DNA from: Octopus bimaculoides | Lineage: Eukaryota | NCBI RefSeq assembly: GCF_001194135.2 | Contig: NC_069003.1 | Location: 17,569,991 to 17,633,990, forward strand | Reading direction: 5' to 3' | DNA: 64,000 nucleotides | Shown: in pieces, positions 5,359-64,000 of the stretch | How positions within the stretch are numbered: position 1 is the stretch's first letter | Layout of the letters: each line of letters starts with the position of its first letter | The notes under the pieces: model-generated | Seen by the model: only the letters and a program-made list of their open reading frames with translations | What the model was told of the DNA's origin: nothing | The model's database searches: none | Translations under genes and position numbers: made by a program

Positions 5359-6357
5359 ATGATGATGATGATGATGATGATTCCTTTTCTTCAGAAGTTC
5401 AGACAAAATTTATTTATCTTACTACAACATCAACATGGTTAACAATAGTTAAGTTAATCCTTTTGATACCATGCCTCCTCAGACCATTCCCCTTGGTTCC
5501 AGAATACAAGTTCCTGGTTTTAAAGTGATCTAAATTAAAACTTCTTTCATCAAAATTTCATGTTAATTTATGTTACAAACATCAGCTTAATAATTGTTTC
5601 AAATTTTGGCACAAGACCAGCAACTTTAGGGATTACATTCACTCAGGTAATAGACTGATACCTTACTATATTAATCACAAAAGGATGAAAGGACATTTGT
5701 AACAAGAATGTAAGGAGCTGGAAGAAATGCTGCTAAGCATTTTGTCCAATGTGCTAATACCTTTTCCAGCTTGTTATCTTAAATAATAACAAAGTTATTT
5801 TACTAAAGTTTTCATTATTTTCAAAATTCATTTTCCAGCACTAGGCTGGAACTGATTTACTGCTGTGTACACTAGAGTCACATGAAATCAAGTCTAAACA
5901 ATTGAACTTGCAACCTTGTGATCATAAACCCAACATCTGAACCACTAGGTATGCACCTTCACATCCTACATACATATATAACTAAATAGAGAGATATACA
6001 AAATTATACACACAAACATAAAAGAACTATATATATACATCCATACATATATATTTAGGTAGTAAAGAAAGAAGTACTCAATACCATAAAGTAGAGTCTT
6101 AACTTTTACTCCAGCAATTACCAACAGTTTTGTTGTGTAACAGCCACACAGTTCTTCAGGCTGTTATGTTGGAATAAAGTCTAAAACTCTATTCCAGCAC
6201 AGACACACAAATATGTATACACACGCACACATACATTGGCACTTACACAAATATGTATATACCCATATATAAATATATGTCTACATACACACAAAAACAC
6301 ACTCTCCGCACATACATATAGATGGATAGACAGATATATATATATATATATATATAT

Positions 6358-7313
6358 NNNNNNNNNNNNNNNNNNNNNNNNNNNNNNNNNNNNNNNNNNN
6401 NNNNNNNNNNNNNNNNNNNNNNNNNNNNNNNNNNNNNNNNNNNNNNNNNNNNNNNNNNNNNNNNNNNNNNNNNNNNNNNNNNNNNNNNNNNNNNNNNNNN
6501 NNNNNNNNNNNNNNNNNNNNNNNNNNNNNNNNNNNNNNNNNNNNNNNNNNNNNNNNNNNNNNNNNNNNNNNNNNNNNNNNNNNNNNNNNNNNNNNNNNNN
6601 NNNNNNNNNNNNNNNNNNNNNNNNNNNNNNNNNNNNNNNNNNNNNNNNNNNNNNNNNNNNNNNNNNNNNNNNNNNNNNNNNNNNNNNNNNNNNNNNNNNN
6701 NNNNNNNNNNNNNNNNNNNNNNNNNNNNNNNNNNNNNNNNNNNNNNNNNNNNNNNNNNNNNNNNNNNNNNNNNNNNNNNNNNNNNNNNNNNNNNNNNNNN
6801 NNNNNNNNNNNNNNNNNNNNNNNNNNNNNNNNNNNNNNNNNNNNNNNNNNNNNNNNNNNNNNNNNNNNNNNNNNNNNNNNNNNNNNNNNNNNNNNNNNNN
6901 NNNNNNNNNNNNNNNNNNNNNNNNNNNNNNNNNNNNNNNNNNNNNNNNNNNNNNNNNNNNNNNNNNNNNNNNNNNNNNNNNNNNNNNNNNNNNNNNNNNN
7001 NNNNNNNNNNNNNNNNNNNNNNNNNNNNNNNNNNNNNNNNNNNNNNNNNNNNNNNNNNNNNNNNNNNNNNNNNNNNNNNNNNNNNNNNNNNNNNNNNNNN
7101 NNNNNNNNNNNNNNNNNNNNNNNNNNNNNNNNNNNNNNNNNNNNNNNNNNNNNNNNNNNNNNNNNNNNNNNNNNNNNNNNNNNNNNNNNNNNNNNNNNNN
7201 NNNNNNNNNNNNNNNNNNNNNNNNNNNNNNNNNNNNNNNNNNNNNNNNNNNNNNNNNNNNNNNNNNNNNNNNNNNNNNNNNNNNNNNNNNNNNNNNNNNN
7301 NNNNNNNNNNNNN
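6358..7313. other. Assembly gap (N run); others at 10145-10177, 36480-37263, 41885-41930, 51379-51388 and 61033-61340
   Basis: N runs, mostly flanked by (AT)n microsatellites. Confidence 0.99.
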
Positions 7314-10111: not shown

Positions 10112-10769
10112 CTGAAAGAAGATATGTATATATATTTATATAAANNNNNNNNNNNNNNNNNNNNNNNNNNNNNNNNNTATATATATAAGGTCGTTTGTGT
10201 GTGTGTGTAAGTGTTTCTGTGTCTTCATGCTGCGATCATGTGAACAAGAACAGTGACATTATTTTAAGCCATCAATTCGTACACAATGTCCAATAGCTCA
10301 GTGGTTTTGTGAAAAAGGTTGATGGCAGGAAGTGCATCCAGCCATAAAATACTGTCTCAATAATCCCATCCAATAGATGTACAAAGGTTCACACACAAAT
10401 ATACATGCAGGTGTGGCAGGGTGATTAAGAAATTTGCTTCTCAGCCACATGGTTTTAAGTTCAGTTCCATGGTACAATGTCTCGAGCAAATGTCTTCTGC
10501 TATACCCACAAATCAATCAAAGCTTTGTCAGTGGATCTGGTAGACAACAACTGAATGAAGCCCATTGTGTATGTGTATACATACACACACACAGTTTTAT
10601 GCCTCCTTGTCTTGATATCTTACAAAATGTACTATAGTATTAAGACCATCACCATTATACAATGGAATATAGAATAGCAGTAATGTACTAAAGCATTTAC
10701 ACCATCAAAGTCACACTATGGTATATAGATGGCAGTCTATCAAGTCTGAGAAAGATGGTTCTGCAATTT

Positions 10770-19059: not shown

Positions 19060-19319
19060 CAAATGCAGGATAATGCTAATAATAGCCTGAACAGGATAAG
19101 CTACCCCTATTTTGCAGGAAAAAGCGAGATTTCTATACATCTTAAATTTGCAGAAGAATGTGGGGTGTGGGCAGTGTAGCTTAATCGGTCTAGAGCACTG
19201 CGACGTATAATCACAGAGGTGTGAGTTCGAGTCTCATAGCTGGCCGCCAACACTTTTTTCTGAAAAATAGGGGTAGCTTATCCTGTTCAGGCTATATTAT
19301 TAGCATTACCCTGTGTTTG
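19060..19319. mobile_element. MITE with about 60-bp TIRs enclosing a tRNA-like unit
   Basis: 19060-19122 (CAGGATAATGCTAATAATAGCCTGAACAGGATAAGCTACCCCTATTTT) is the complement of 19253-19319. Confidence 0.8.
19169..19249 (+). pseudogene. tRNA-like sequence (Ile-UAU/Met-like) ending in CCA and followed by T6
   Basis: A box TAGCTTAATCGG, D stem GCTT/GAGC, anticodon arm CTGCGA-CGTATAA-TCACAG, T arm GTGAG-TTCGAGT-CTCAT, imperfect acceptor stem, GCCA at 19246-19249. Confidence 0.65.
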
Positions 19320-36286: not shown

Positions 36287-36479
36287 CTATATACATATAT
36301 ATATATATACATACATATATATATATACATATATACATATATATATACATATATACATATACACATATACATATATATACATACATATACATATATATAT
36401 ACATATACATATATATACATATATATACATATACATATATATACATATATATACATATACATATATATACATATATATA
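36287..36479. repeat. (ATATAC)n/(AT)n microsatellite running into a gap
   Basis: Direct reading. Another long (AT)n at about 39415-39486. Confidence 0.95.
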
Positions 36480-37263
36480 NNNNNNNNNNNNNNNNNNNNN
36501 NNNNNNNNNNNNNNNNNNNNNNNNNNNNNNNNNNNNNNNNNNNNNNNNNNNNNNNNNNNNNNNNNNNNNNNNNNNNNNNNNNNNNNNNNNNNNNNNNNNN
36601 NNNNNNNNNNNNNNNNNNNNNNNNNNNNNNNNNNNNNNNNNNNNNNNNNNNNNNNNNNNNNNNNNNNNNNNNNNNNNNNNNNNNNNNNNNNNNNNNNNNN
36701 NNNNNNNNNNNNNNNNNNNNNNNNNNNNNNNNNNNNNNNNNNNNNNNNNNNNNNNNNNNNNNNNNNNNNNNNNNNNNNNNNNNNNNNNNNNNNNNNNNNN
36801 NNNNNNNNNNNNNNNNNNNNNNNNNNNNNNNNNNNNNNNNNNNNNNNNNNNNNNNNNNNNNNNNNNNNNNNNNNNNNNNNNNNNNNNNNNNNNNNNNNNN
36901 NNNNNNNNNNNNNNNNNNNNNNNNNNNNNNNNNNNNNNNNNNNNNNNNNNNNNNNNNNNNNNNNNNNNNNNNNNNNNNNNNNNNNNNNNNNNNNNNNNNN
37001 NNNNNNNNNNNNNNNNNNNNNNNNNNNNNNNNNNNNNNNNNNNNNNNNNNNNNNNNNNNNNNNNNNNNNNNNNNNNNNNNNNNNNNNNNNNNNNNNNNNN
37101 NNNNNNNNNNNNNNNNNNNNNNNNNNNNNNNNNNNNNNNNNNNNNNNNNNNNNNNNNNNNNNNNNNNNNNNNNNNNNNNNNNNNNNNNNNNNNNNNNNNN
37201 NNNNNNNNNNNNNNNNNNNNNNNNNNNNNNNNNNNNNNNNNNNNNNNNNNNNNNNNNNNNNNN

Positions 37264-38263: not shown

Positions 38264-38619
38264 CTGAAAAATAGACATATCATCATCATCATCATCATCA
38301 TCATCACGACCACCACCATCACCATCACTATCATCACCGTTGCCAATGACAACACCTCATTTTTTAGTTTTATACTTTTTCTGAGTGTCAATCTAATACA
38401 ATTACTGTGTCCTTTTGGCTTTTGTTGTTTTTCCTGTTTTTGGTTTTATTTTTGATTTGCCTGTGTGTGTGTGTCCCCGTGTCCCCATGTCCCCGTTTCA
38501 GAAATAAAGCATCTAACACTGATCACTGAAGATAAAACTGACTGAAATGTATTGTAGATATAAAAATTATAGATACATTCGATATAGATATCTATATTAC
38601 AAATAAATATTCTATCCCT

Positions 38620-47921: not shown

Positions 47922-47940
47922 GTTTGAACAGTTAAGGAGA
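47922..47940 (-). promoter_or_regulatory. U12 branch point and AC acceptor (TCTCCTTAAC-TGTTCAA-AC)
   Basis: TCCTTAAC consensus 9 nt before the exon start, with no AG between it and the exon. Confidence 0.88.
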
Positions 47941-48169
47941 AATAAGCACAAAAAACTGGAGTGTCATTGAATGTGGCACACCCCTAAACACAAAAATATT
48001 CATATACATCAGTATCAGCAGAAATAAGGAATTCCAACACATACAGGGTCACTAATATTTAGAAGAAAAGAAGGAAGATTAGGGTAGTGTTGCTTAAATC
48101 AACCTAAATTTTTGTAAACAAGTACACCAGGAGGGTGGTCTGCAAAATTTAAATCTACTGTATTAATAA

Positions 48170-48385
48170 TAGTTTCAAATTTTGGCACAAGGCCAGCAAT
48201 TTCGGAGAAGGGAGTAAGTTGATTACACCAATCCCAGTGCCCAACTGGTATTTATTCTGTCTACTCTGAAAGGATGAAATGCAAAAGTCAACTATAGCAG
48301 AATTTGAACTCAGGACGTAAAAACAGATGAAATGCTGCTAAGCATTTTGCCCAGTGTGTTAATTATTTTGTCAGCTTGCCACCCT
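48170..48385 (-). mobile_element. SINE family C
   Basis: Matches 56194-56414. Confidence 0.65.
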
Positions 48386-48539
48386 ATCTTTTGTATTAAT
48401 GATGGGTTGAAACACAGACCTGGGAATAAAAGAATGACCCAGGTTCAAATCCTGCTAGAGGCATGATTTTTGAAAGCAATAGGAGGACATCTAATGCAAC
48501 ATTTGTGTGTCTGTGTTTGTCCCCATCACCATCGCTATC

Positions 48540-51000
48540 AACCAAGAATGAATATTTGAAGGAACTCATACGTAGAATAAGATGGAAGACATACCATTTC
48601 GACAAAAAAACTTGAAGAATATAATGAAAAAATGAATTTAGAAACAATGAAACAGAACTGATAAAGAAATATTTTAAAATGAGAAGATACCCACCACCTA
48701 ATAGACATCTAAATGGTTTTGAAGAAGATATATGGGATACAGTAAAGAACATTAAATTCATTAGACACCCTCTTAAGAATGAACATTTGAGGAAATTAAG
48801 ATCCATAATCTTGGATTTAAAATCCAAAGAAGGTATTTTAGTTCACTAGGATAAAACTGGAAACATTTGCCACTTAAATATTAATTTATATCATGAGGCG
48901 ATTGATTTAACAAAATTGAGAACAAAGATAAATGCAAATTTTTGCAGGTCAACATCAATGATTACTACTCATCCATTAACCCAATGATTCTAAACAATGT
49001 ACTATTGACTATGAAAACAATAAAAGTTACATTAACAGCCAGAAAAGCAATTATAAATTTTGATAACAAATCATGAGCTAGAAAGGACACACCAGACTGT
49101 TTTGATATAGCTATGGGAGCTATTGATTCTGCCCAGGAGACTATTTTGGTTGGAATATACATTTTACATAAGTTTAATAGTGAATTTCCAGAAACAGGGG
49201 TGGTTTATATAGGGATGATGCACTGTTTATCATAAAAAATCCATCCAATAAAAAATTAGTTATATAAGAAAAAATTGCATCAGTTCTTCAAAAGATTTGG
49301 CCTAAATATTTCAATTGAAAGGAAGCACAATTCTGTAAATTTTTCGAATGTGAATTTTAACCTAAATACAGGTAAATATGTGCCTTACCAGAAACCGAAT
49401 TCTAAAATAAAATATTAATATTAAAAGTGATCATCCAAAGTCCATTACTAAATGTTTAGTTAAAAATATAGAAAAAAGAATTAATTACCTCTCTTATGAG
49501 ATTTTTGATGAAAATAAAGAATTATACAATTAAAAAAAATTTTTTTTTACTCTAGGCACAAGGCCCAAAATTTTGGAGGAAGGGCCAGTCGATTAGATCA
49601 ACCCCAGTATGAAACTGGTACTTAATTTAACAACTCCGAAAGGATGAAAGGCAAAGTCGATCTTGGCAGGATTTGAACTCAGAATGTAAAGACATGAAAT
49701 ACCGCTAAGCATTCCGCCTGGCGTGCTAACATTTCTGCCAGCTCACTGCCAAGAGTTATAAAATATTGCATTGGAAAAGGCAGGATATAAACAGAAAATT
49801 AAATACAATATACATATTGTTAATAACATGAGTATAGACCAAAGAGAAGAAAATCTACTAATGTTAATATAAAAAAAACCCTAGGATTAAGGGTAAAATA
49901 AATAATAAGAATAAAGAAGAAATAGATTATGGAAGACACAGTAGAAATAGAGTGAGTAAAAATAACCCAAATCAAAACAGAGTAGTAAACATAAATAAAA
50001 CAGGCCAAAATACTAATGTTTATCAATATAACAATAATAAAAATGTAAACCTAGATATATTACACATCAAACCTAATAAAAGAAGCGCTAATAATGATAT
50101 ACATGGGAAAGATAAAAATAATGTAAAGATCAATATCTTGAAATCTAATGTTAATAATCATAATAAAAATGGAAATTATAGTACTAAAAAGAATAAAAAC
50201 AGAAAATATATACCCTGTATAGAATCCACCAAAACAAAAACTTGGAATTACCATACTAATAATGAAATAAATGAAAATATTATTTGGCTAATCTTACCCT
50301 TTGCTAAACAAATTAAGACTAAGTTAATCAAACATATACGTAGACTGATAAACAGGCACTTCACTTGTAATAAATATAGTGAAATTATTTATCATTAATT
50401 TTTAAGATATGGTTTTTCAGTAACTAGAAACATATTTAGATATATATCTTTTATTAATAATGCAAAATTTGATCATTTAGCATGCATTATATATCTACCA
50501 CGAGTAATTCTCATAATTTTAGCTTGAACTATCAAGGGGAAATAACTACCAAAAATCCACCTACTTTAGTGAATTCCAAAGATAATCTTAATAAATTTTG
50601 CGATTGTAAGATTAAAGAAAAATGCAAATTTAATAATCTGGTATACAAAGCTATTGTTGAAGCAGAAGAGTCACTACTATATTGGTTCGACAGAATGTTT
50701 TGTGAAAACCAGAATTTCAAACCATGAGAATTCTTTTAGAAATGGAATAAAATGGAATACTACAAGCTTTAGCAAATTCATTTGGAAATTAAAAGATAGC
50801 AATATTAGTTTCAAAATAAGGTGGAAAATATTAACTGCTGCAAAATCTTACCATTCTCCAGACAGAATATGTTCCTTATGTGCAACAGAAAGCCATAATA
50901 TTCTATTCTCCAAAAAAACAATTATTGAATGAGAGGACTGAGGTTTTGGCCTGTCTACATGCACCAAAATACCTATTTTCCAAATATCAGTAATCGATTC
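48540..51000 (+). mobile_element. Penelope-like element (RT, Asn-rich linker, GIY-YIG), decayed, inside the U12 intron
   Basis: PP...L.GFEED, DKTGN, YIGDD, IIW..LPF, YYIGSTE..VKTRISNH.NSF...SKFIWKLKD...IRWKIL and CSLC motifs. Confidence 0.8.
49531..49750 (-). mobile_element. SINE family C inserted in the PLE
   Basis: 14-bp TSD-like flanks AAGAATTATACAAT / AAGAGTTATAAAAT. Confidence 0.75.
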
Positions 51001-51388
51001 CTAAATTATTATTATTAAATAGTAGATTGGATAAGTTCTATAATAACAATAAAAATTTTTGTTTTATTTTATAGTATTGTTAAATTATAAACTAAATATA
51101 TTGGTAAATATCTGAATTACATATATCCTCTGAGAATTATTAAATATTCCGTTAAATTATTATTATAAAATATAAATAGATATACTGATATATATCTGAT
51201 TAGGTTAATGCATTGTTATATTATAGATATTATGATGTAATATATTCAATTATTAGACATTTTGGCATATTAATACCTTAATATTTAATATGTCTTTCTG
51301 GATACACACGCAACACATACATTAGATATTTTACCTTAATACACAAAACTATAACTTAAACATAACACACACATATATNNNNNNNNNN

Positions 51389-51422
<34 letters not shown>

Positions 51423-52184
51423 CATAAATAATCATTCATTTCATTTTATATGACTTTCTACCTTTATATACATATATTGTAACTTTACCATATTACTGCT
51501 TATAAACATTTAATATATATAAGTTAGATTAACTTATTTTATTTTACTTAATTGTATCCAGTTGTATTACAGAACAGATATATTTATTATAAATAAATAA
51601 TATAAGTAAATATTAAACCTTTAACAGTTATATAAATAATTTTTATATTAACTCCAATAAGATATTTGAAGGAACAGGTCTATAAAATATTCTGTTGGCC
51701 TTTTTCTTTAACTAAACATGAATCAATGATGTAATACACATTGTACTTAGCAGATAGATACATAATACACATTTTCTAGGTATATAAATAAATGAACTGA
51801 TAGATATGTAATCTAAGATTTCTATATATTCTATTATAATATAAAATAAAGATTATTATTTTATCTTAATTTTTAATTTATTCTGTTTATCCCATTTTAC
51901 TTTATTTTGTTTTCGTTTTTACCCCCTTTTAGGACAAATACTGAATTATATACTTAGTATATTTAACTGATGCTTAAACATAAATATATGTATATAAGAA
52001 AATATATACACTTACTGTATACATGTGTATATATATTAACTTGAATAATATATCTATTAATGGATAGAATATTCAAATTTGAGTAGATACTAACACATAT
52101 ACAAACAATTAAATTTGATTAAATATGATTTGATGAACATGTATACATGGATATTTACTAGTACCCACTAGCAAGCCAATGAAA

Positions 52185-52845
52185 ATTATATATAAGCAAT
52201 CAATATTTGATTCTCACGATCAGCCGACCTGATTCTGCATTTCCCTACTCACAGTTTTGAACTGCTAAACATTATTATTGCACTTCCTTAATTTGAATCT
52301 TAAACATTAAGGACTTCATTCATACATTTCTATACATACATACTCTTTTGAATGCCCATTACTCCGATAATTCTGCATTTTTACAGTTACACTTTTTCCA
52401 TGACAGTAGATAAATTTTTTTTATTCCACAACGTATTTGTAGTGGCTTCATGCAGGCAGAGCGTGGATTCAATCCTCGATTGCCAAATTTCATTTAACAC
52501 TTCAACAGCGCTTTTCTCACAGTAAAACAATAGTTTTTCTGTGAATCACAGCAGTTATACATTTCCCAGATGCCTACGCTTAGCAGAATGCCTTTGCCAC
52601 TTGACCCTTCTAACCTCTTCTCGGCTATCAAGGGCTGGAATAGAGATAACAGACCTCCAACGAAATCATTTGTTCTCAACAATATGTCTATCCTTCTGGC
52701 TGCTTTTCGATAGTTGTAAAAACAAGAACTCCGTAAGCTAAAGGCAGTTACTGAGAGCAACCATCAGTGAGTGTGTACGTTATTGTTGCACTTTCTTCAT
52801 TTCATTCTTAAACATTAAACACTTCATTCATATACTTATATACAT
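52185..52845 (-). mobile_element. Second copy of the Helitron-like repeat
   Basis: 52200-52380 is the reverse complement of 24850-25030 / 25600-25700. Confidence 0.5.
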
Positions 52846-54296
52846 GTATATATTACCTTTAATAAATTAGCCTCCATAAAATTCACCTTCAAAATGCCAC
52901 GCTGAGTCAGAGTACTTTCTCACCAACTTAAGAAAACCTCCCTCGCCAACCTCCAACAATCTCTCCCTCCTCCAGCTGAGAGTTTTTTGTACTTTTTCAT
53001 GACGGAAAATACACCTTTTGTGGCAGTTATAATGAAATTGCTTTCTTATATCAGAGTAATAAGGCGTTTCAATAGAACATCTTTACCTTCAGGAATTACT
53101 GGGTACACCAGCTAGTATATATATTGTTTGTTTTTATGTTCAATTATAATAACAATAATTCACATTTATCTGATGGGTTACTTACTCTATATTTTTGTAG
53201 AGTACAAATTTATTATTCTTATGCAGGGATGTTGTTGACAGGGACTTCAAAGTTTTGTCCAACGAAGCTATCATCAGACTGCAGTCTGACAATTACTTAG
53301 CTGGCTGAAACTTTGAAGTTACTGCCAACAACTTATATATATATAAATACACACACAAGCACTTGCATTCATGCTGGTGCCACATAAAAAGCACCCAGTA
53401 CACTCTGTGGAGTGGTTGGCATTAGGAAGGGCATCATCATCATCATCATCGTCGTTTAACATCTGCCTTCTATGCTGACATGGGTTGGACAGTTTGACAG
53501 AAGCTGGCTAGGCAGGGGCTTGCACCAGACCTGTGTCTATTTTGGCAGTTGCTACAGTTGGATGCTCTTCCAAATGCTAACCACTTTATAGTGTGGACTG
53601 GATGCTTTTTGCATGGCACCAACACTGGCAGGGTCACCAAGTAACTTGCAAAACAATGATCCTTTGGGAGGAGAGGGGCTTTGGAGGAGGTAATCTTGTG
53701 TCAGATGATGAAAGGTTCAAATGTAACAGAGAGGCAGAAACAAGTGTCTTGCTGTAGCAGAGAGTGAATGAGAGTGAGAGAGAGAGAGAGAGTGAGTGAG
53801 TGAATGATCAAGAATAAGGACAGAAACAGGTGTGCTGCTGTAAAGGAGATACAGGGCAATCCAGTCTGAGGGAAGAGAAAGAGAGAGAGTGGGAGACAGA
53901 GTGCAGAGTCTGGCCTTACCATTTCCAGTTAAATCGTCCAACTCATGCCAGCATGGAAAATGGACATTAAATGACGATGATTCACATGTGTGTGTGTGAT
54001 ACGTGCATACACACACACAAAGCTATTTATCTGAACAGGATAATAACATGCAGCAGGTTATCTTCCCCTATCCCCACAACCACCTCCAGACAAATGCAGA
54101 ATTAAAATATTTTACTTTTACCAATGAACTAGTAAAGCAAGCAATTACCTGCAGCAGGATGTGAACCTACAACCATCTATTTCCCCAGGAATCCAACACC
54201 ATTCCAACAGTAGCTTCCCAGTCGAGGTAACAGAAACATGGAAGACTTGGTGATGATGATGATGATGATAATAATAATAACAACAATAATAATAAT

Positions 54297-54870
54297 AAAA
54301 TGCCCTGATGCAGTACCAGGCAGTTGTTCTCATGGTTTCTGATCTTAACTGATTAGAAGTGTTATCATGTACATGTTTTGTCTTGGTATAAAAGATGGGC
54401 TTCAGCAAATATTCTGCTCAATACCACAGATTTGCTTGTCCGTTGCTTGACCGTAACCAGTTGAGCATGTCCCTTAGTGGCTGACGATATTGGCATCTCT
54501 GATCATGGGCAGAAGTAATGGGGGAGCATCATAGCCATGTGTTGAGAGGAATTCTTTGGGGTTTAGATAATTCACTTTTGGAAATATGGGTGTTTTGTTC
54601 AACATCCTTAAACAACCCTTCTTCAGAGACCTTTTGAGCAGGATGGGCTACTTGACCTGAAGAAAATTCAAATTGGGCCCCACCTGCAAGGTCATGCACT
54701 GTTTATCTTGATATGAGATTACCATCTTGCACACATATAGTTGTGATGCATGCACCTGGTGTACCCTTATCAGAGGGGTAGTCATGATAGGTATACTGGG
54801 CTTCGTATATTTTATCCCAGTGTCACATTGATGGCATGCACTGCTCTCTCACTCAATAGTAATAATAGTT
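54297..54870. repeat. Unclassified interspersed repeat of about 570 bp bounded by (AAT)n
   Basis: Partial second copy at 17985-18160; no ORF. Confidence 0.55.
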
Positions 54871-55839
54871 TCTATTGAAAGGTACTACTATAAAACAGAC
54901 ACAATTCTTAAACACCACCACCCCTACCTCTGCTGCCACTACTACCACTACATCCTTCGCCACTGCCACTTGCCTGTTCTTTTCAAGATGATTCAGTCTC
55001 ACTTTTATACCTTTTAGTGTCTCAGGTTGTCGAGTGATCAATAACAAAGAATATGAGAACAAAATGTAGGAGGAAGTAGTTCTTGGTAGCAGCAGTGAGG
55101 ATAGCAGAGAGAAACCAAAATACAAAAAAAAAAAGAAAAGAAAAGAAAAAAAAATAGAAAAAAATATCAAATGATGTTATCAGATAGACCGAAATTCTGC
55201 AGGTGGAGAATACAAGAACCACCATCAAAAGTTAACACTAACAGTAAACTTCTTACAGAAACGTTTCTTATCTGTGAAGCAAGTTACTTGCCTCCACCAC
55301 ACCCACCACCCCACATGATATTAACATTCTCTTGCTGAAGGTACTAAAGTACACCAAAACATAGAATATTATGAGGATTTGGAATCAGTCCAGGATTCCA
55401 GCTAAAGATTTTAGATTTGAACAAAAAAATGCGTAACTGCTGAGATTTTATTCTAATCTTGTTTACAGGTGGTCAGTTGGTCAATCAGTCAGTTGATTGG
55501 TCAATTGCTTGTTGGTTGGTCAGTCAGCAGATTGGTTGTTTAAGGCAAGTCAGCTCAGGCCAAGAAGCAAACCAATGATCATAAACATTCCAGCCACAAC
55601 CAACCAATCCATTCATTCAGCTGTGTGTATGTGTGTGCGTGCATATGTGCATGTGTTTTCTAAGACAGTAGGAAGAGATTTCAGGGTGGTTTGTCTGCAA
55701 TTTCTTACAGGTCGTCTGACTTTATAGACTTCTTTGCTTGTCATGCACACTACTATATTCATAAATTACCAAAGCACACTTATCAAATTTTTAAGGAATT
55801 TGATCAATTGAAGAAACATTTTTTATTAATGTATAAATA

Positions 55840-56450
55840 CTTGAAATTATTCAGTGAATTGAGTTGAAAAAGTTGAGTCAAACAAATCAACTCCAGTACT
55901 TATTTTTAAAGGCTAGTAGTTATTCTAACAGTCTCTTTTGCCTAATGGCTAGGTTATGAGGGGGTGTAAACAAACCAACACTGCTGTCAAACAGTGATGG
56001 GGGGACAAACACATACATAAAGACACATACACATAGACATATACATATATATACACAAGAAGCTTCTTTCAATTTCCATCTACCAAATCCATTCGCAATG
56101 CTTTTGTTGCCTAAAGTTACAGAAGATACTTGCTCATGGTGTCATGCAATGAGACTGAATCAGGAACCATTTGGTTACAAAGCAAGCTTCTTATTTCTTT
56201 ATTGCCCACAAGGGGCTAAACATAGAGGGGACAAACAAGGACAGACAAAGGGATTACGTACATTACATTGACCCCAGTGTGTAACTGGTACTTAATTTAT
56301 CGACCCTGAAAGGATGAAAGGCAAAGTTGACCTCGGCGGAATTTGAACTCAGAACGTAACGGCAGATGAAATACCACTAAGTATTTCGTCCAGCGTGCTA
56401 ACGTTTCTGCCAGCTTACAAAGCAAGCTTCTTACCACACAGCTGCACCTT
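55840..56450 (-). mobile_element. SINE family A containing a SINE family C insertion (56194-56414)
   Basis: Perfect 19-bp TSD TTACAAAGCAAGCTTCTTA at 56175-56193 and 56415-56433. Confidence 0.85.
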
Positions 56451-56461
56451 TATATATAATT

Positions 56462-58400
56462 TATCTCTTGGTGCTGAACCGCATCTGAAACCCCGAGATG
56501 TAGGAATCAAGCATTTCACATATTGCTCCTGGTACATGATACATCTGGAGTGCTAGTTGAATCATCTGATAAGGCACAGAACCATACTCGTTTGCTAAAT
56601 CTAACCAGACTACATCAAGGTCAGTCTTATTCTCTCTTGCCTTCTGAATAGCTTTCCAGATCATGCTCCATGTTCAAGGCATCCAGCTATCCCTAGCACA
56701 CCGCCCTTCTGAAACCCCGAGATACACAATTACCTGGGCTAGATTGGAGGTTAGAACAGGGATCGGTTGTGCAGTGTCACTAATACTCTTCATGATGGCG
56801 ATGCAGGTACTTCTCAGGGCAGTAAAAAAACAAAGCAAGTGCAGCAGACCTTGGTGGTGGATGTAAGATGCCACCTCTGAAAACCTACATTTATGGCACT
56901 ACTATCATTGCATCAAAAGAGTTATAAACCTGGAATCTGCTCAACCAACCAGACGAGATGATGGTCTGGTGCAGAATGACTTTCAAACCCCCAAAATTTA
57001 GGAGCCTCTTCCTAAGGAAAGGGAAAATGAAAGAAGATATTAGCTTTGAAGTTGGTGGCCAAATGATTCCCACTGTATCAGAGTAGTCAGTGAAAAGTCT
57101 TGAAAGATGGTATGACAAGACCTTGAAAGATGCCAACCAGGTGAAGGAAACCGCCATGACAGTAGATGAGGGTCTACTCAAGATTGACAAGCATCCTATA
57201 CCCATCAAATACAAGGTCTGGTCTCTTCAACATACGCTGATACCAATGTTGCTATGGCTCCTGCTAGTGTATGAAATTCCAACTTCAACAGTGGAAGCAA
57301 TGGAGGCAAAAATAGGTACATTAGCAAGTGACTTGGTGTACACCTGAGTCTGAATGATGTTGGTCTCTACTGCAAGAGGGCAAAACTGAGACTGCCTCTC
57401 AAGCCTTTAGTTAAAGAGATCATGGCGGGGAAAGCAAAACTGGCATGGTTAGATCGGTTTGGCCAAGCCTGAAGACAGGAAGGAAGTGGAAAGTCATGGA
57501 TGCAATTGATGATGCTGAAAAGAATCTCAAAACCAAAGAGATGATGGGAGCTACCCAGACAAGAAGGCAAGGATTGGGCACTACCAATGTGCAGAGGTGG
57601 TCAAAAGCAACAGGCAAAGTCCAAAGGGATCTTGTTATTCATGAGGTTAGAAGTGAAGAGGAAAGAAACAGGTATGTGAAAGATAACCAACAATCTCAGC
57701 AGGGACGATAGACAACCTGGGATGCTGCAATGCAGAAATCTCTCACATGGAACGATGTGTGGCACATTGTGGCGATTGAGTTTCATAATAAGAGCAACAT
57801 ACAACCTGCTTCCATTAAAAACCAATAAGTCCCCTGTGCAAGGAAAACCCCAGTCAATGGACCATGTCCTAAGTTCCTGCAAGACAGCTCTTGCTGACAG
57901 CAGATACACATGGAGGCACAACAGAGTGCTGAAAGAATTGACCTCTTCAATCTGGGACCAAATGCAGTGCGACACAGCCAAATCAAAAGAGGCCTTAGTA
58001 ACCAAAGAAGGAAAAAAGTGGGCTGGAGCGAAGATAACTGGATATGAATTTGTGGCAGGAGGGAACCTACTTGGATGTGAGAGTTCCTGGAAAATAGCTG
58101 CAGACATCGGTGAGAAGCGCAAGAACTACCCAGAGTTCATCACCAAGAAAGGCTTGCGACCAGGCATTGCCTTATTGTCTGAACAGAGTGCCAAAGTGAA
58201 TTGAATTGTCAGTACCATACAAGAGCCGCATAGAAGAGCAACACTAAGATGAGCAAATATGGTGAGCTGGCAAAACAGATAAGGAGAGCAGGTTACCATT
58301 GTACTGTGATGCCAGTTGAAGTTGGAGACAGGATTTTGGAAAGCAGCCGGAGGACACCTAGGAGTCATGACTTGGGTGGGCCTGGCTCCCATAAAGTGTC
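56462..58400 (+). mobile_element. HERO-like RLE non-LTR retrotransposon with an inverted 5' segment
   Basis: VVWLDLANEYGSVP on the minus strand (56462-56692); GCAVSLILF, HVLSSCKTAL..RYTWRHNRVL, RPGI and PVEVG on the plus strand. Confidence 0.8.
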
Positions 58401-58504
58401 AGGAATAAGGGCTGAAACACTTGTTGGATGGGAGTTCTTCCTCTGAAGATCTCTCCTGCTGTGCGCTCGCCTTGCAGCAAGTTTCTGTTATACACACCAA
58501 CACA

Positions 58505-58715
58505 TAAGGTGGTGAACTGGCAGAGTCATTAGGACACCAGACAAAGTGTTTAGCATCATTTCATCTGTCTTAATGTTGAGTTTAAAGTCTGGCAAGGCTG
58601 GCCTTGCCTTTCATCTTTTTGATGTCAATAAAATAAGTAGCAGATGAGCACTGGGGATGATGTAATCATCTTACTCCTGCTCCAAAATTGCTGACCTTCT
58701 TCCAAAAATTGAAAC
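58505..58715 (+). mobile_element. SINE family C
   Basis: Head GGTGGTGAACTGGCAGAGTCATTAG. Confidence 0.6.
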
Positions 58716-58814
58716 CAATATCATACCAACACATGTTACCCACCAACTAAACCAAATTAAATTCAACAACTAAAAGTCTGAAAACAAGCATAGATGCTGA
58801 GGAAATTTTCTTGG

Positions 58815-59195
58815 CACAGGCATGGCTGTGTGGTAAGAAGTTAGCTTCCCAACCACATAGTTCCAGGTTCGGTCCCACTGCATGAATCTTGGGCAAGTGT
58901 CTTTTACTATAGCCTTAGGCCAACCAAAGCCTTGCAAGTAGATTTGGTAGGTGGTAACTGAAATATGCTCATCGTGTGTGTGTGTGTGTGTGTTTGTCCC
59001 CCACCATTGCTTGACAACCAGTGTTGGTGTGTTTATGTTCCTATAATTTAGTGGTTCAGCACAAGAAACTGACAAAATAAGTACCAGGCTTTAAAAAAAT
59101 AAGTACTGGGGTTGATTCATTCAGCTAAAATTCTTCAAGATAATGCCCCAGCATGGTCACAGTAAAATGACTGAAGTAGGAGAAAAGGATGAACA
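58815..59195 (+). mobile_element. SINE family A ending about 25 nt from the U12 donor
   Basis: Complete head, body and tail. Confidence 0.75.
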
Positions 59196-59212
59196 AATAA
59201 ATAAAACAATAA

Positions 59213-59221
59213 AAAGGATAT
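59213..59221 (-). promoter_or_regulatory. U12 5' splice site ATATCCTTT
   Basis: Exact match to the RTATCCTTT consensus directly after exon A. Confidence 0.9.
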
Positions 59222-59261: not shown

Positions 59262-59399
59262 CTATAAATATAAATGGAAAACAAAAAAAAAACATAGAAG
59301 ACATTTTCATGTTCAAAGACAATGACTACAAAGATGGAAATTTGAGATGTTAGAAGAATAACAACAGAATCAACAATAACAACAACAATAATAATGTGC

Positions 59400-59645
59400 A
59401 ATTGGCACTCCATTGGTTACAACAAAGAGTGTTTCAGTTGACCTGATCAACAGAACAACCAGCTCGTGAAATTAACATGCAAGTGGCTGAGTATTCCATA
59501 GACATGTGTACCCTTAATGTAGTTCTCAGAGAGATTCAACATGAAACAGAATGTGACAAGGCTGGCCCTTTGAAATACAGATACTGCTCATTTTTGCCAG
59601 CTTAGTGGACTGGAGCAACATAAAATAGTGTCTTGCTCAAGGTAC
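59400..59645 (-). mobile_element. SINE family B (body)
   Basis: Matches 4490-4630. Confidence 0.55.
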
Positions 59646-59845
59646 TCATGCCAATGATACACAAAAGGTACCTGTATCAGTGACATGTAAAAGACACTCA
59701 TACTGGTGACATGTAAAAGACACCCAGTACACTCTCAGGAATGGTTGACATTAGGAAGAGCATCCAGACTTAGAAACCAAGCTAAAACAGACTAGACCCT
59801 GGTGCAGCTCTCTGGTTTACCAGTTCCAGTCAAACTGTCTAACCC

Positions 59846-60093
59846 AGTTGAGAAACTCTCAACCATTTTTTGCCTATGGACCCATTTGATTCCTATTTTG
59901 CTCAGTTGGACCTTTCAAGACATTCAATGTTTAAAAAATCCAATTATATTTTCTTAATTAAATATCATTAGGAATTGTCTTATGGAAGTTGTTAAAATAT
60001 TTAGTGTATTGTAGAAGGATAAGCAGTTTGTTGCTTAACAAAATCTGATACGGATCCCCAAGGACCATATGGACTCCGGTTGAGAAATAATGG
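59846..60093. mobile_element. hAT-type MITE inserted in an RTE tail
   Basis: 8-bp TSD TCTAACCC (59838-59845, 60094-60101); CTCAACC / GGTTGAG subterminal inverted motifs. Confidence 0.7.
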
Positions 60094-60465
60094 TCTAACC
60101 CATGCCAACATGGAAAATGGACACTAAATGATGATGATGATGATGAATTCCTTCCCACTTCATGTTCCTTTTTGCATTATCTTTGAATCTCAGTCTAGGT
60201 CTTTCAGTTTCTTTTTCCCTTGCATAGTTGGGAGTAAAAGGTTTGTCTGGAGAGTCTGTTGTCCATCCTATGCACAATCAATGTAAATTTCTATCAATGA
60301 GGATTTCTATCAGGAGACAGACCAACATACCACAGGATCTATTTGTTCCTGATCTTGTCTAATAGAGTGATATTCATAATTGATTGCAGCTGTCTCAGCT
60401 GTAAAATGTGTATAATGTGCAAAATGTGACTGGTGAATATTAATTATATCAAACCCTAAACCTAC

Positions 60466-60510
60466 CAATGAAACGATGGAAAAGTACACTCAACATCAGT
60501 GTGACTGAAG
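60466..60510 (-). CDS. Candidate additional or alternative PLC-like exon (45 nt, phase 1-1; SVTLMLSVLFHRFI)
   Basis: tatttttcacatccttag acceptor and TTG|gtaggt donor, stop-free and in frame with exon A. No recognisable PLC homology. Confidence 0.25.
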
Positions 60511-61340
60511 CTAAGGATGTGAAAAATAGTGTAATGCCTTAACCAGTATTTAATTAAGTATTTGAATAAATTAGCTTGGATACATTTCTAACAATGTTCA
60601 CTGTACACCCTCCAACACCACCACCATCACTGTCAGAATTAATTTTGCCTTTCATTCTGGAAGGACGAAAGACAAGATTGATTCTGGCAGGGTTTGAACT
60701 TGTGAAATAAAATACAAAATTCAAATGAAAAATACAAAATTAATAAACAAATCAAAATCAAAAAGACAGAAAGAAAGAAAGCAAGATAGCAAGGCTGATA
60801 TATATATATATATATATAATTTTGCTTAAAAGAGTTCCAACACTGTCTGTTTTTTATGTTTTATTTATATTCCTGCAGAACTAATGTGGGGTATAGAATA
60901 TGGAATATACAATATATAATATGATATACAATATACAATATAAAATAAAATAAAATAAAATAAAAAAAATAAAAATGGATGGCACTATGAAAGAAAGTAT
61001 TGAATGTAGATGAAATATTGAGTGTTCAATATNNNNNNNNNNNNNNNNNNNNNNNNNNNNNNNNNNNNNNNNNNNNNNNNNNNNNNNNNNNNNNNNNNNN
61101 NNNNNNNNNNNNNNNNNNNNNNNNNNNNNNNNNNNNNNNNNNNNNNNNNNNNNNNNNNNNNNNNNNNNNNNNNNNNNNNNNNNNNNNNNNNNNNNNNNNN
61201 NNNNNNNNNNNNNNNNNNNNNNNNNNNNNNNNNNNNNNNNNNNNNNNNNNNNNNNNNNNNNNNNNNNNNNNNNNNNNNNNNNNNNNNNNNNNNNNNNNNN
61301 NNNNNNNNNNNNNNNNNNNNNNNNNNNNNNNNNNNNNNNN

Positions 61341-62607
61341 ATCCCACGAAAATTCAGTTTTTTGCAATAGCATGAACTAAAAGTCAGAGGGGGACAGGAT
61401 AAACTACCTGCATCAACTTGCTATAAAAGCAGGTAGTAATTTTACCTTGTCCTTATTCTTAGTGCAAGTTTTGAAGAGAGCAGTTCGATTGTAACAGTTA
61501 TTTTTTCAAAGCTATAATGCAACTGACAAAGGAGAATATTCGGCATATTTTGCGTTATGAGTTCAATAAAAGCAACAACCCAACAGAAAGTGTGAGGAAT
61601 ATTAATGCAGTATACAGAAATCGGACAATAAGCGTAAGCCAGGGTCAACGGTGATTCCAGACATTCCAAACCAGAAACTACAGCCTCAGCTTGGAAGATC
61701 TGTAGAGCTCAACGAGGATGTCCTGCAAACCCTGGTGGAACAAAATCCCAATGTAACTGTTGAGGAACCAGCAGAGAAGCTTGGATTTGGTTATTCAATC
61801 ATTCATCAACACCTGCGTGCTATAGAAAAAGTCAGCAAATAGGATCAGTGGATTCCTTGCAATCTTTCCAAGTCTAATTGCATTCAGAGAGTGAATGTAT
61901 GCTCTTCTTGCTGTCATGTCTCACAAATGAACCTTTTTTGGACCAAATAGTGACTGGTGACAAGAAATGAGTTCTCTATAAAAATATCAAGCACCAAAGA
62001 CAGTGGGTAGGGAAATGAGAAACACTGGCACCCCAGGCTAAAGAAGGTCTTCACCCACACAAGGTGTTGCTATCTGATTGGTGGGATATGAAAAGGTTAG
62101 TCCACTTAGAACTTTTAAACCCAAAACAAACGATAACAAAGGGGATCTACTGCAAGCAGCGTCAGTGGCGTAAGTCAGTGCTAGAACAAAAACAACCATC
62201 TTTGGTTTCAAGATGAAAGGTGTTCTTCCATCAGGATAATGCTCATCCACATACAGTGAGGATGACATCCCAAAAGCTGGAGCAGTTTGAATGGGAAATG
62301 ATGCCCTACCCACTTCATTCAGTGGACATTGCCCCATCTGATTATCATTTATTTCGCTGTTTTCAAAATCATTTGGATGGAAAAAATATGAATTCTGTAG
62401 ATGAGGTCAGAACAATATTGTAGAAGTATTTTTCATCATAGACAAGTGAATTTTGGAAAAAGGGCCTTGCAAGTCTACCAGATAGATGGAAGAGCATTGT
62501 AGAAAATGAAGAAGAGTATATTTTAGATTAAAAAAGAACTTTGTTTATCTTAATTTTGAAAAATAAAGAAGCATAATAAAACTGCATTATTTATGGGATG
62601 ACCCAAT
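61341..62607 (+). mobile_element. Mariner (DD34D) transposon, near full length, decayed
   Basis: MQLTKENIRHILRYEF start at about 61517; HQDNAHPH and DIAPSDYHLF motifs. Right TIR TTATGGGATGACCCAA-TA; left TIR partly in the gap. Confidence 0.85.
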
Positions 62608-63778
62608 ATATATATATGTGTGTGAGTCAGCCTTGGTAGATTATATATATATATATACATACATGATTAATGTAATTTAATTTAAATTTTTCTCTTTTCT
62701 TATTGCACATATAAATATCTGAAATAATTGAAACTGATATTGCATTTTGATGAAACTATATTTTCCCCCTTTTATTTATGATTTCTTACACACACAACAC
62801 ACACACAGAGGAAACGATGTATTCACCTCTTCAGTAAGGTGCCCGCTCTTGTCACTCTAACATACTTTGATATCCCTCAATATTATAGCCAATTCAGTTG
62901 AGGAATCTTGTCTTGTGGGTACTTGATGATTTCACTAGTGCTGGTGCCATGAACAGAAAAAAAGGACCCAGTATACTCTGTGAAGTGATTGGTATTTGGA
63001 AGGACATCCAGCTGTAGAAACCATGCCAAAGCAGACAGCAGAGCCTGACACAGCCTTCTGACTCATCAGTTCATGTTAAATCATTCAGCACAGGCCAGCA
63101 TGAGAAGAGGATGTTAAATAACTGACAGATGGATGGATGGACAGATAGCTAGATGCCAAGGTGAGTAGCCTAGAGTTTAGAGCATTAGGCTCACAATCAT
63201 AAGGCCAGAAATCCAACTCCTGGACAAGGCAAGATGCTTTATTTCACATTGCTGTAGTCTATACAGTTGTAAATGTTTAGTTGCTAAGTATTAGTGTAGC
63301 TCTCTCTCCCTCCAACTGTCACACCCTTGATATCCCAGCAATTCAAGAGGTGGAAGAGTTAAATGAGTGTCTATGCCTATCAGTAACTATACAGGAACCT
63401 AAGACAATTAGTGAAAGCATGGTGCATATATGTATGCATGTATGTCAGGTCATTCATAGTGCAACTGGTAACATGTAATCCAGTATAACCTGTCACATGA
63501 CTGGGTCATTGGCAACAAAACCAGCAGCCCTACTAAGGTTGCTTGGTGTGAAGAGTGATTTTCATTGGACATCTTGCAGGACAGGAAACAAAGCCTGTCA
63601 CAGATGGGGCAGCTATTAACAGCCATCCAACAGTTGGGAGTGAGAAATTCCTAGTTTTTGTTCAGACATCCTACAAGAAGGAAATTCTGATAAATAAAGT
63701 ATAAAGCCAGAGATCTTGCTCTCGCTTGTTACTGGACTTTAGAGGTAAGAGTCTTAGAAATGTGCAAGCTGTTATTCA

Positions 63779-64000
63779 TCATCATCATCATCATCGTTTA
63801 ACGTCCGCTTTCCATGCTAGCATGGGTTGGACGATTTGACTGAGGACTGGTGAAACCGGATGGCAACACCAGGCTCCAGTCTAATTTGGCAGAGTTTCTA
63901 CAGCTGGATGCCCTTCCTAACGCCAACCACTCAGAGAGTGTAGTGGGTGCTTTTACGTGTCACCCGCACGAAAACGGCCACCCTCGAAATGGTGTCTTTT
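63779..64000 (-). mobile_element. Young RTE 3' tail copy, cut by the window end
   Basis: Near-identical reverse complement of 37325-37550. Confidence 0.8.

Follow-up and report, generated by a model that had tools for sequence, protein, structure and literature searches.

A predicted AT-AC intron of the minor spliceosome in a PLCL/PRIP-like phospholipase C gene of Octopus bimaculoides, and its counterparts in other animals

Introduction

How can an exon be spliced into its gene when there is no AG at the boundary where homologous proteins place its start, and no GT anywhere inside the small exon that should precede it? This question is raised by a phospholipase C (PLC)-like gene on the minus strand of a 64,000-nt stretch of the Octopus bimaculoides genome (contig NC_069003.1, positions 17,569,991 to 17,633,990), which we call the window and to which all octopus coordinates refer. 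The two exons, here named A and B, lie 11.3 kb apart in the assembly. A first-pass annotation had proposed that they are joined across a U12-type (minor-spliceosome) intron of the AT-AC subtype, of the kind that predictors looking for GT-AG introns miss. We find that this is very probably right, and that the gap between A and B would be a functional AT-AC intron in an octopus PLCL/PRIP-like gene. The proposal is supported by the consensus signals, the spacing of the branch site, the homology of the joined protein, the conservation of the intron in five other animals and the published lists of vertebrate PLCH, PLCZ and PLCD genes with minor introns.

According to a review, 60% of human PLC genes have minor introns (PMC6865273). 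PLCH1, PLCH2, PLCZ1, PLCD1, PLCD3 and PLCD4 are minor-intron genes in both human and mouse, and PLCL1 and PLCL2 are absent from the lists of both species (Olthof et al. 2019, supplements, PMC6717393). A pan-eukaryotic survey, with Octopus sinensis among its species, found molluscs to be relatively enriched in minor introns, and the lengths of minor and major introns to co-vary across species (rho = 0.903; PMC10639083). Our literature search found no paper on this particular intron in cephalopods.

Results

The junction between exons A and B

The splice-signal strings of the earlier proposal, and its in-frame join from AT to AC, were all confirmed on the minus strand at the positions given in Table 1. 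Read in the sense direction, with slashes at the splice boundaries, the region of exon A is ...tttccatttatatttatAG/CACCTGAAGCCCTTGATGAACTTCACCAAATGAGAGATTC/ATATCCTTTTTATTG, and the downstream site is ...ttgtgcttatttcTCCTTAACtgttcaaAC/A TGG CTG CAG GAA ATG TTT GAA TCA GCA GAT. The core ATATCCTT, which defines the 5' splice site of the U12 AT-AC subtype, stands directly at the end of exon A. At the other end TCCTTAAC is followed by 9 nt and then by AC, which puts the branch-point adenosine 10 nt from the 3' end of the intron; in U12-type introns a distance of roughly 8-20 nt is acceptable, and a long polypyrimidine tract is not needed. Exon A itself has a pyrimidine-rich acceptor of the U2 type (tatttatAG) and a donor of the U12 type. 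Joining A to B keeps the frame and gives PEALDELHQMRDS/WLQEMFESAD, that is ...HQMRDS/WLQEMFESAD, or PEALDELHQMRD-S(TC/A)-WLQEMFESAD when the split codon is written out. The predicted junction reads ...AATGAGAGATTC/ATGGCTGCAGGAA in nucleotides, equivalently CACCAAATGAGAGATTC/ATGGCTGCAGGAAATG.

Such short strings can be met anywhere. The window has four copies of ATATCCTT, with 3.65 expected, and, on either strand, one of TCCTTAAC, with 2.26 expected. Each 8-mer is thus at about chance frequency, and the argument must rest on their placement and not on their presence. The sole TCCTTAAC of the window has its branch adenosine 10 nt from the boundary expected from homology, and ATATCCTT adjoins a 40-nt exon whose orthologues in a snail and a tick are 40 nt as well. 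Placement arithmetic from the window counts yields values of about 3e-4 and 3e-5 for a specified site. Exons A and B and the splice signals are unique sequence in the window and not copies of a repeat.

The joined protein agrees with what other animals have at this place. In an alignment of full-length PLC proteins the consensus over the junction is RDxWLKxxFExADKxxDG; in octopus exon A supplies R-D, exon B supplies W-L, and x is encoded by the split codon. The corresponding stretch is LRDSWL..VFESADKSGDG in sea-urchin proteins and SPDNMDERQRMREKWLQEMFE.AD in tick proteins, and the residues of exon A align to SPDNMDERQRMRE / LRD in full-length PLCL-like proteins. Because the sea-urchin and tick proteins match, the 13 residues of exon A are homologous coding sequence, and the terminal AC lies where the join keeps both frame and homology.

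Table 1. Positions of the gene parts, splice signals and intronic elements in the octopus window (slash, splice boundary)
Feature	Position	Strand	Remarks
Exon A	59261-59222	-	40-nt micro-exon; encodes (x)PEALDELHQMRD + S(TC/); preceded by ...tttccatttatatttatAG, followed by ATATCCTTTTTA
U12-type 5' splice site ATATCCTTT	59221-59213	-	intron +1 to +9; 9/9 match to AT-AC consensus
Predicted AT-AC intron	59221-47922	-	11,300 nt as assembled, including 10 N
U12 branch-point sequence TCCTTAAC	47938-47931	-	context ttcTCCTTAACt; near-perfect consensus
Terminal AC of intron	47923-47922	-	intron end ...tttcTCCTTAACtgttcaaAC
Exon B	47921-47792	-	130 nt; encodes (S)WLQEMFESADSDKSGVITENAVIQLMKKLNCNIHTEKIQQKLK, first EF-hand; ends AAG/gtaaaaa
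Exon C	38263-38151	-	GT-AG introns
Exon D	29221-29155	-	GT-AG introns
Exon E	23487-23394	-	GT-AG introns; acceptor tatcAG/GAACCT
Exon F	22691-22574	-	GT-AG introns
Exon G	18446-18361	-	GT-AG introns; donor T/GTGAGA
Exon H	11200-11080	-	GT-AG introns
Exon I	10111-9943	-	acceptor side GT-AG; gene runs on past window start
Assembly gap, 10 N	51379-51388		intronic; between ...CACACATATAT and perfect (TA)15.5 at 51389-51419
SINE-sized dispersed repeat, about 160-210 nt, four intronic copies	48163-48381, 49543-49750, 56248-56416, 58542-58721 (inverted)
Second dispersed repeat, about 360 nt, at least 7 window copies	58817-59179		ends 43 nt downstream of 5' splice site
GIY-YIG-like motif (YYIGST...R...H), ORFs	50473-50929	+	PF01541 E=0.0087, 16.8 bits, below 22.6-bit cut-off
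RT-like ORF fragment (..VVWLDLANEYGSVP..)	56464-56673	-	motif reading, no Pfam match; head-to-head with next
RT-like ORF fragment	56648-56863	+	motif reading, no Pfam match
Degenerate non-LTR retrotransposon, 3' part	57087-58443	+	antisense to gene; zinc-knuckle-like H..SSC...RY.WRHN.VL and restriction-like-endonuclease-like region (motif reading)
N, unread base; ORF, open reading frame; RT, reverse transcriptase; SINE, short interspersed element; LTR, long terminal repeat.

The same intron in other animals

The earlier proposal had suggested comparing the intron position at the codon before the EF-hand tryptophan across PLC genes. Read at that codon, the genomic loci of homologues from five other animals, namely a snail, a tick, a teleost, a shark and a priapulid, all have a U12-type intron there, in phase 2 as in octopus and before the conserved tryptophan with which the first EF-hand begins; in the priapulid it is seen on the 3' side only (Table 2). 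In 21.9 kb upstream of the priapulid site, searched for [AG]TATCC[TC], there was no convincing donor. Octopus, snail and tick share a conserved 40-nt micro-exon.

Table 2. The site before the EF-hand tryptophan in octopus and in homologous loci (locus handles in brackets; slash, splice boundary; number after the branch site, distance in nt to the 3' end of the intron)
Species	Gene	Upstream exon	Donor	Branch site	3' end	Intron length
Octopus bimaculoides (window)	PLCL-like	40 nt	TTC/ATATCCTTTTT	TCCTTAAC (10)	AC/A TGG	11,300 nt
Bulinus truncatus, snail (L002)	PLCL2-like	40 nt	TGC/ATATCCTTAAA	TTCTTAAT (9)	AC/A TGG	205 nt
Ixodes persulcatus, tick (L006)	PLCL-like	40 nt	AAA/GTATCCTTAGC	CCCTTGAC (16)	AG/A TGG	1,327 nt
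Zoarces viviparus, teleost (L001)	PLC-eta-like	long PH-domain exon	CCA/ATATCCTTCAG	TCCTTAAC (16)	AC/A TGG	260 nt
Chiloscyllium, shark (L004)	PLC-delta4-like		CCA/ATATCCTTCTT	TCCCTAAC (9)	AC/G TGG	926 nt
Priapulus caudatus (L003)	PLCL2-like			TTTCTTAAC (24)	AC/C TGG	
Branchiostoma lanceolatum, amphioxus (L005)	PLCL1		intron absent at site			0

The amphioxus PLCL1 gene is built differently, with residues 67-482 (PH, EF-hands and the start of X) in one 1.25-kb exon (L005, 49918-51165), and octopus has at least 7 exons, spread over about 41 kb, for the equivalent region. The single amphioxus exon indicates that introns were lost en bloc in the chordate PLCL lineage, and the pattern would be consistent with a cDNA-mediated loss.

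Several public gene models go wrong at this very site. The PLC-eta-like gene of Zoarces is broken into two, a PH gene and an EF-X gene (L001, 1-30057), the 'partial' PLCL2 model of Bulinus begins at exon C and omits both the 40-nt exon and exon B (L002, 5836-6207), and the RefSeq PLCL2 model of Priapulus takes 24 codons from the 3' end of the intron as coding (L003, 21836-21908). Several other vertebrate predictions change from junk to PLC sequence exactly at the tryptophan. The tick model, where the intron is of the GT-AG subtype, is correct.

Points against the AT-AC intron, and alternative explanations

Some observations weigh against an AT-AC intron between A and B, and they should be set beside the evidence above. 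The claim that exon B has no AG acceptor stands at the homologous boundary only, for there are AGs at -62, -34 and +10 (47983, 47955 and 47911), which in theory offer alternatives to a U2-type spliceosome. No cephalopod protein or transcript spanning the A-B junction was found in either protein search. The exon upstream of exon A is outside the window, and exon A is taken to be used because of its acceptor sequence and its homology; a PH-domain exon was not found in 59262-64000 with regular expressions and a sensitive tblastn search, and a single WISGL at 63215, considered as a piece of such an exon, is a chance match. Lastly, the intron length of 11.3 kb is an estimate only, since the 10 N of the gap need not reflect its true size.

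The alternative that survives best starts from this gap. It accepts the intron and holds that its size or contiguity is an assembly artefact, the gap hiding much more sequence or a mis-join, so that 11.3 kb with nested insertions would misdescribe the locus, which we consider unlikely. Exon B is 3.4 kb and exon A 7.8 kb away from the gap, which sits in a (TA)n tract, and no repeat copy elsewhere in the window bridges the flanks of the gap. The window has six assembly gaps, three of which directly adjoin (TA)n: 6358-7313, 36480-37263 and 51379-51388, beside the tracts 6334-6357, 36295-36476 and 51389-51419, respectively. This suggests that the assembly breaks systematically at TA repeats. Against an artefact of this kind speaks that exon A is followed directly by exon B, collinear with it and on the same strand, and that every orthologue has this arrangement. 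In snail, tick, fish and shark the two are direct neighbours and the protein lacks no residue between them, and the scaffold join is therefore consistent. The neighbouring introns are similar in size, and a gap in a microsatellite is typical of a sequencing failure within a scaffold, which we argue for rather than a mis-join. As the gap is intronic, the reading frame across it is irrelevant.

It could also be that exon B is mainly the first coding exon of an isoform without a PH domain, transcribed from a promoter in the intron and started at the methionine in WLQEM, so that the AT-AC join is minor or not used. In favour stand the size of the intron and its many repeats, which could carry promoters, and the example of PLC-zeta, which shows that PLCs without a PH domain exist. 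We nevertheless find this very improbable. Octopus keeps both U12 signals, and the 40-nt exon keeps its length, its frame and its MRD motif, which implies purifying selection on the join; moreover, the frame of the tryptophan has no ATG upstream of exon B.

That the major spliceosome instead uses one of the three AGs, all within 62 nt of the boundary, together with another GT donor, the AT and AC strings being coincidental, has in its favour the chance frequency of each 8-mer and a frame that is open upstream to 47983, but it can hardly be believed, because the -62 and -34 sites would add residues without homology (..FCAYFSLTVQT), the +10 site would delete the conserved W-L-Q with its near-invariant W-L and is absent in the snail, which reads TGGTTATTGGAA, exon A offers no GT, the same U12 signals stand at the exact site in five other species, and the Priapulus and fish models that do use such upstream AGs carry junk residues. 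A functional U12-type AT-AC intron is the reading we keep.

The PLC-like gene in the window

Nine exons on the minus strand were laid out by tblastn with homologues, and exons A-I form one open frame that covers the EF-hand region and the beginning of the PI-PLC X-box. From the PH - EF-hand - X - Y - C2 architecture the window thus holds the EF-hand region and the start of X, and Y and C2 would lie beyond the window start. The A-B junction is the only one of the gene's junctions in the window that is not GT-AG. The seven other introns, from B-C to H-I, measure 9,528, 8,929, about 5,667, 702, 4,127, 7,160 and 968 nt, and the minor intron is the longest of them all, yet in the same size range as its neighbours (0.7-9.5 kb). 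A length of 11.3 kb is unremarkable, for octopus introns as well as for minor introns generally.

The best matches are the 'inactive PLC-like protein 2' of Bulinus and Priapulus (62-63% identity), and the closest full-length ones are RefSeq 'inactive PLC-like protein 1/2' of Oratosquilla, Ornithodoros and Branchiostoma, names that were given automatically. By these best matches to automatically named models, the gene appears closest to the invertebrate PLCL/PRIP-like proteins. The label 'inactive' should not be assumed for octopus, since the catalytic residues that are visible in the X-box are intact. SSHNT, VELDCW, VYHG and LENH are all kept (exons F-I), motifs that we take to correspond to His311/Asn312, Glu341/Asp343, His356 and Glu390 of PLC-delta1, and the protein, whose Y-box lies outside the window, may be catalytically competent.

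A second candidate U12 donor, ATATCTCC just past exon G, was rejected, as a GT-AG intron from T/GTGAGA restores VELDCWDG. Three further observations concern the introns of this gene. A 33-N gap at 10145-10177 lies 34 nt upstream of the exon I acceptor (10111) and may leave part of the branch-site region of intron H-I unread. The acceptor of exon C (tgatgatgatgatgatgatgatgatatgtctatttttcAG/GAATTA) has a (TGA)8 microsatellite about 16 nt upstream of it, at about 38280-38303 on the minus strand. In the F-G intron, antisense to the PLC gene, there is a tRNA-Ile(TAT)-like sequence (19169-19249, plus strand; ARAGORN, and Rfam with 31.2 bits against a cut-off of 29 bits), which could be a real tRNA gene or the head of a SINE.

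Repeats and remnants of mobile elements in the intron

Matches to dispersed repeats with copies elsewhere in the window make up about 20% of the intron, and the SINE-sized repeat has further copies at about 5.2, 13.2 and 18.7 kb. The first-pass annotation had named Penelope-like (PLE), HERO, Helitron-like and SINE insertions, and these labels fared unequally. A putative fragment of a long interspersed element (LINE) with a restriction-like endonuclease, and SINE-like repeats, can be recognised; the GIY-YIG match is below threshold, and evidence for a Helitron was not found. The LINE fragment contains an ORF (57680-58201, plus strand) that is 100% identical to UniProt A0A0L8HH18_OCTBM ('Uncharacterized protein'), and a transposable-element fragment has therefore been annotated as a host gene. 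This uncharacterised octopus protein was the only close database match of the ORFs in 57087-58443, and Pfam gave nothing. The GIY-YIG-like ORFs are possibly the remnant of a PLE endonuclease, and no adjoining reverse transcriptase was identified. The two RT-like fragments suggest an inverted rearrangement or two opposed insertions. The Pfam scan covered ten ORFs of the intron, none of which supports a Helitron. A HERO element would be known by an RT with a C-terminal restriction-like endonuclease and by the place of that RT in the HERO clade, a PLE by a GIY-YIG endonuclease linked to a PLE-type RT, and a Helitron by a Rep/helicase ORF or by 5'-TC...CTRR-3' termini with a 3' hairpin. HERO and PLE are plausible but unproven labels for the intronic inserts.

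A peptide RDSWM at 56694, in an ORF like those of transposable elements, was dismissed, as a stop follows and a splice context is missing. Rfam gave for the intron only a sub-threshold snoU25 (E=0.075, 25.7 bits against a cut-off of 50 bits), which we treat as chance, and there are no minor small nuclear RNA genes within the 64-kb window. At the window edge, within the span of the PLC gene, a run of ORFs (186-2516, minus strand) has retroviral-type RT motifs (..YVKKKNNKIRLCADF..), a CCHC zinc knuckle (CFKCGKIGHKKSHC) and RNase H/integrase-like stretches, and looks like an LTR retroelement (Ty3/gypsy-like).

Discussion

If the intron is spliced as other introns of its class, U11 and U12 would bind together as a di-snRNP (two joined small nuclear ribonucleoproteins), U11 pairing with ATATCCTTT and U12 with TCCTTAAC. 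U4atac/U6atac.U5 would join next, with U6atac taking the place of U11 at the donor, and the bulged branch adenosine would then attack the donor, the AC 10 nt downstream being picked by its short distance. The micro-exon would be defined jointly by its U2-type acceptor and its U12-type donor. Exon-bridging interactions between the two spliceosomes are reported for vertebrate minor-intron genes (PMC8034651). The octopus intron reveals no new mechanism, and the suggestion that it is rate-limiting for this PLC is speculation.

The size of the intron would come from a genome-wide, repeat-driven inflation of octopus introns and not from its class. It is about 55-fold longer than the 205-nt intron of the snail, and its GT-AG neighbours have grown too. 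That its size is like that of these neighbours fits the scaling between minor and major intron lengths (PMC10639083).

The octopus intron is the cephalopod member of a PLC-family minor intron that is already catalogued in vertebrates, and the novelty first ascribed to it was overstated. As judged by position, phase and signals, it appears to be an orthologue of an ancient intron in protostome PLCL-like and vertebrate PLC-eta and PLC-delta genes, and probably in PLC-zeta genes as well. What the cephalopod, gastropod and tick data contribute is that the minor intron of PLC delta, eta and L predates the protostome-deuterostome split, that the length of the adjacent 40-nt micro-exon has stayed fixed, and that an en-bloc loss removed the intron from chordate PLCL. 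There is also a practical side. The octopus PLC-like gene needs an annotation in which exon A is joined to exon B by a non-canonical junction, and the fish, snail and priapulid models at the same site are examples that AT-AC introns are still mis-modelled.

A wider hypothesis can be put forward, tentatively, and we ourselves find it doubtful. The PLCL/PRIP-like genes of protostomes might keep an ancestral bilaterian module, consisting of the 40-nt micro-exon, its U2-type acceptor, its U12-type donor and the phase-2 minor intron before the EF-hand tryptophan. This module would have persisted in cephalopod, gastropod and tick, with switches between AT-AC and GT-AG, and would have been erased together with neighbouring introns in chordate PLCL, and the length of the exon would be fixed by an obligatory exon definition across the two spliceosomes or by regulated skipping. 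If this is true, the PLCL output in these animals would be gated by the activity of the minor spliceosome, as skipping of 40 nt would shift the frame, and the octopus copy would show that such a splicing module tolerates a 55-fold expansion of its intron.

One known system for comparison is that of the vertebrate PLC-eta genes. The minor intron of PLCH1 and PLCH2 has the same donor core as octopus after the ..RD-x codon; the listed donors are CCA/ATATCCTT, in full CCA/ATATCCTTT for PLCH1 (human and mouse, score 100) and CCA/ATATCCTTA for PLCH2 (PMC6717393). The teleost PLC-eta-like gene has the same codon and phase before the EF-hand tryptophan, the branch site TCCTTAAC and a terminal AC. The octopus gene, however, groups with PLCL/PRIP-like genes and not with eta, and its upstream exon is a micro-exon, whereas that of the fish is a long PH-domain exon. 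The lengths also differ widely, with 11.3 kb in octopus against 260 nt in the fish, 7.7 kb in human PLCH1 and 205 nt in human PLCH2; the minor intron of human PTEN has 29 kb (PMC6717393).

The vertebrate PLCD4 and PLCZ1 are minor-intron genes too, and the intron of the shark PLCD4-like gene is AT-AC at the same codon as in octopus. They belong, however, to other paralogous subfamilies, and PLCD4 of human and mouse is of the GT subtype with a degenerate donor (TCA/GTATC..); the donor of PLCZ1 is AAG/ATATCCATC (AAG/ATATCCAT..) (PMC6717393). The PLCL-like genes of snail and tick have in common with octopus the 40-nt micro-exon ending in ..ATGAGAGA(T/A, here alternatives), the phase, and the U12 donor and branch signals. 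Unlike the repeat-filled intron of octopus, that of the snail is short and has a weaker branch site (TTCTTAAT), and the tick intron is of the GT-AG subtype, GTATCCTT...CCCTTGAC...AG, where octopus has AT-AC. Chordate PLCL1 and PLCL2 (PRIP) are the closest named family to the octopus gene, but the PLCL1 of amphioxus has no intron at the site.

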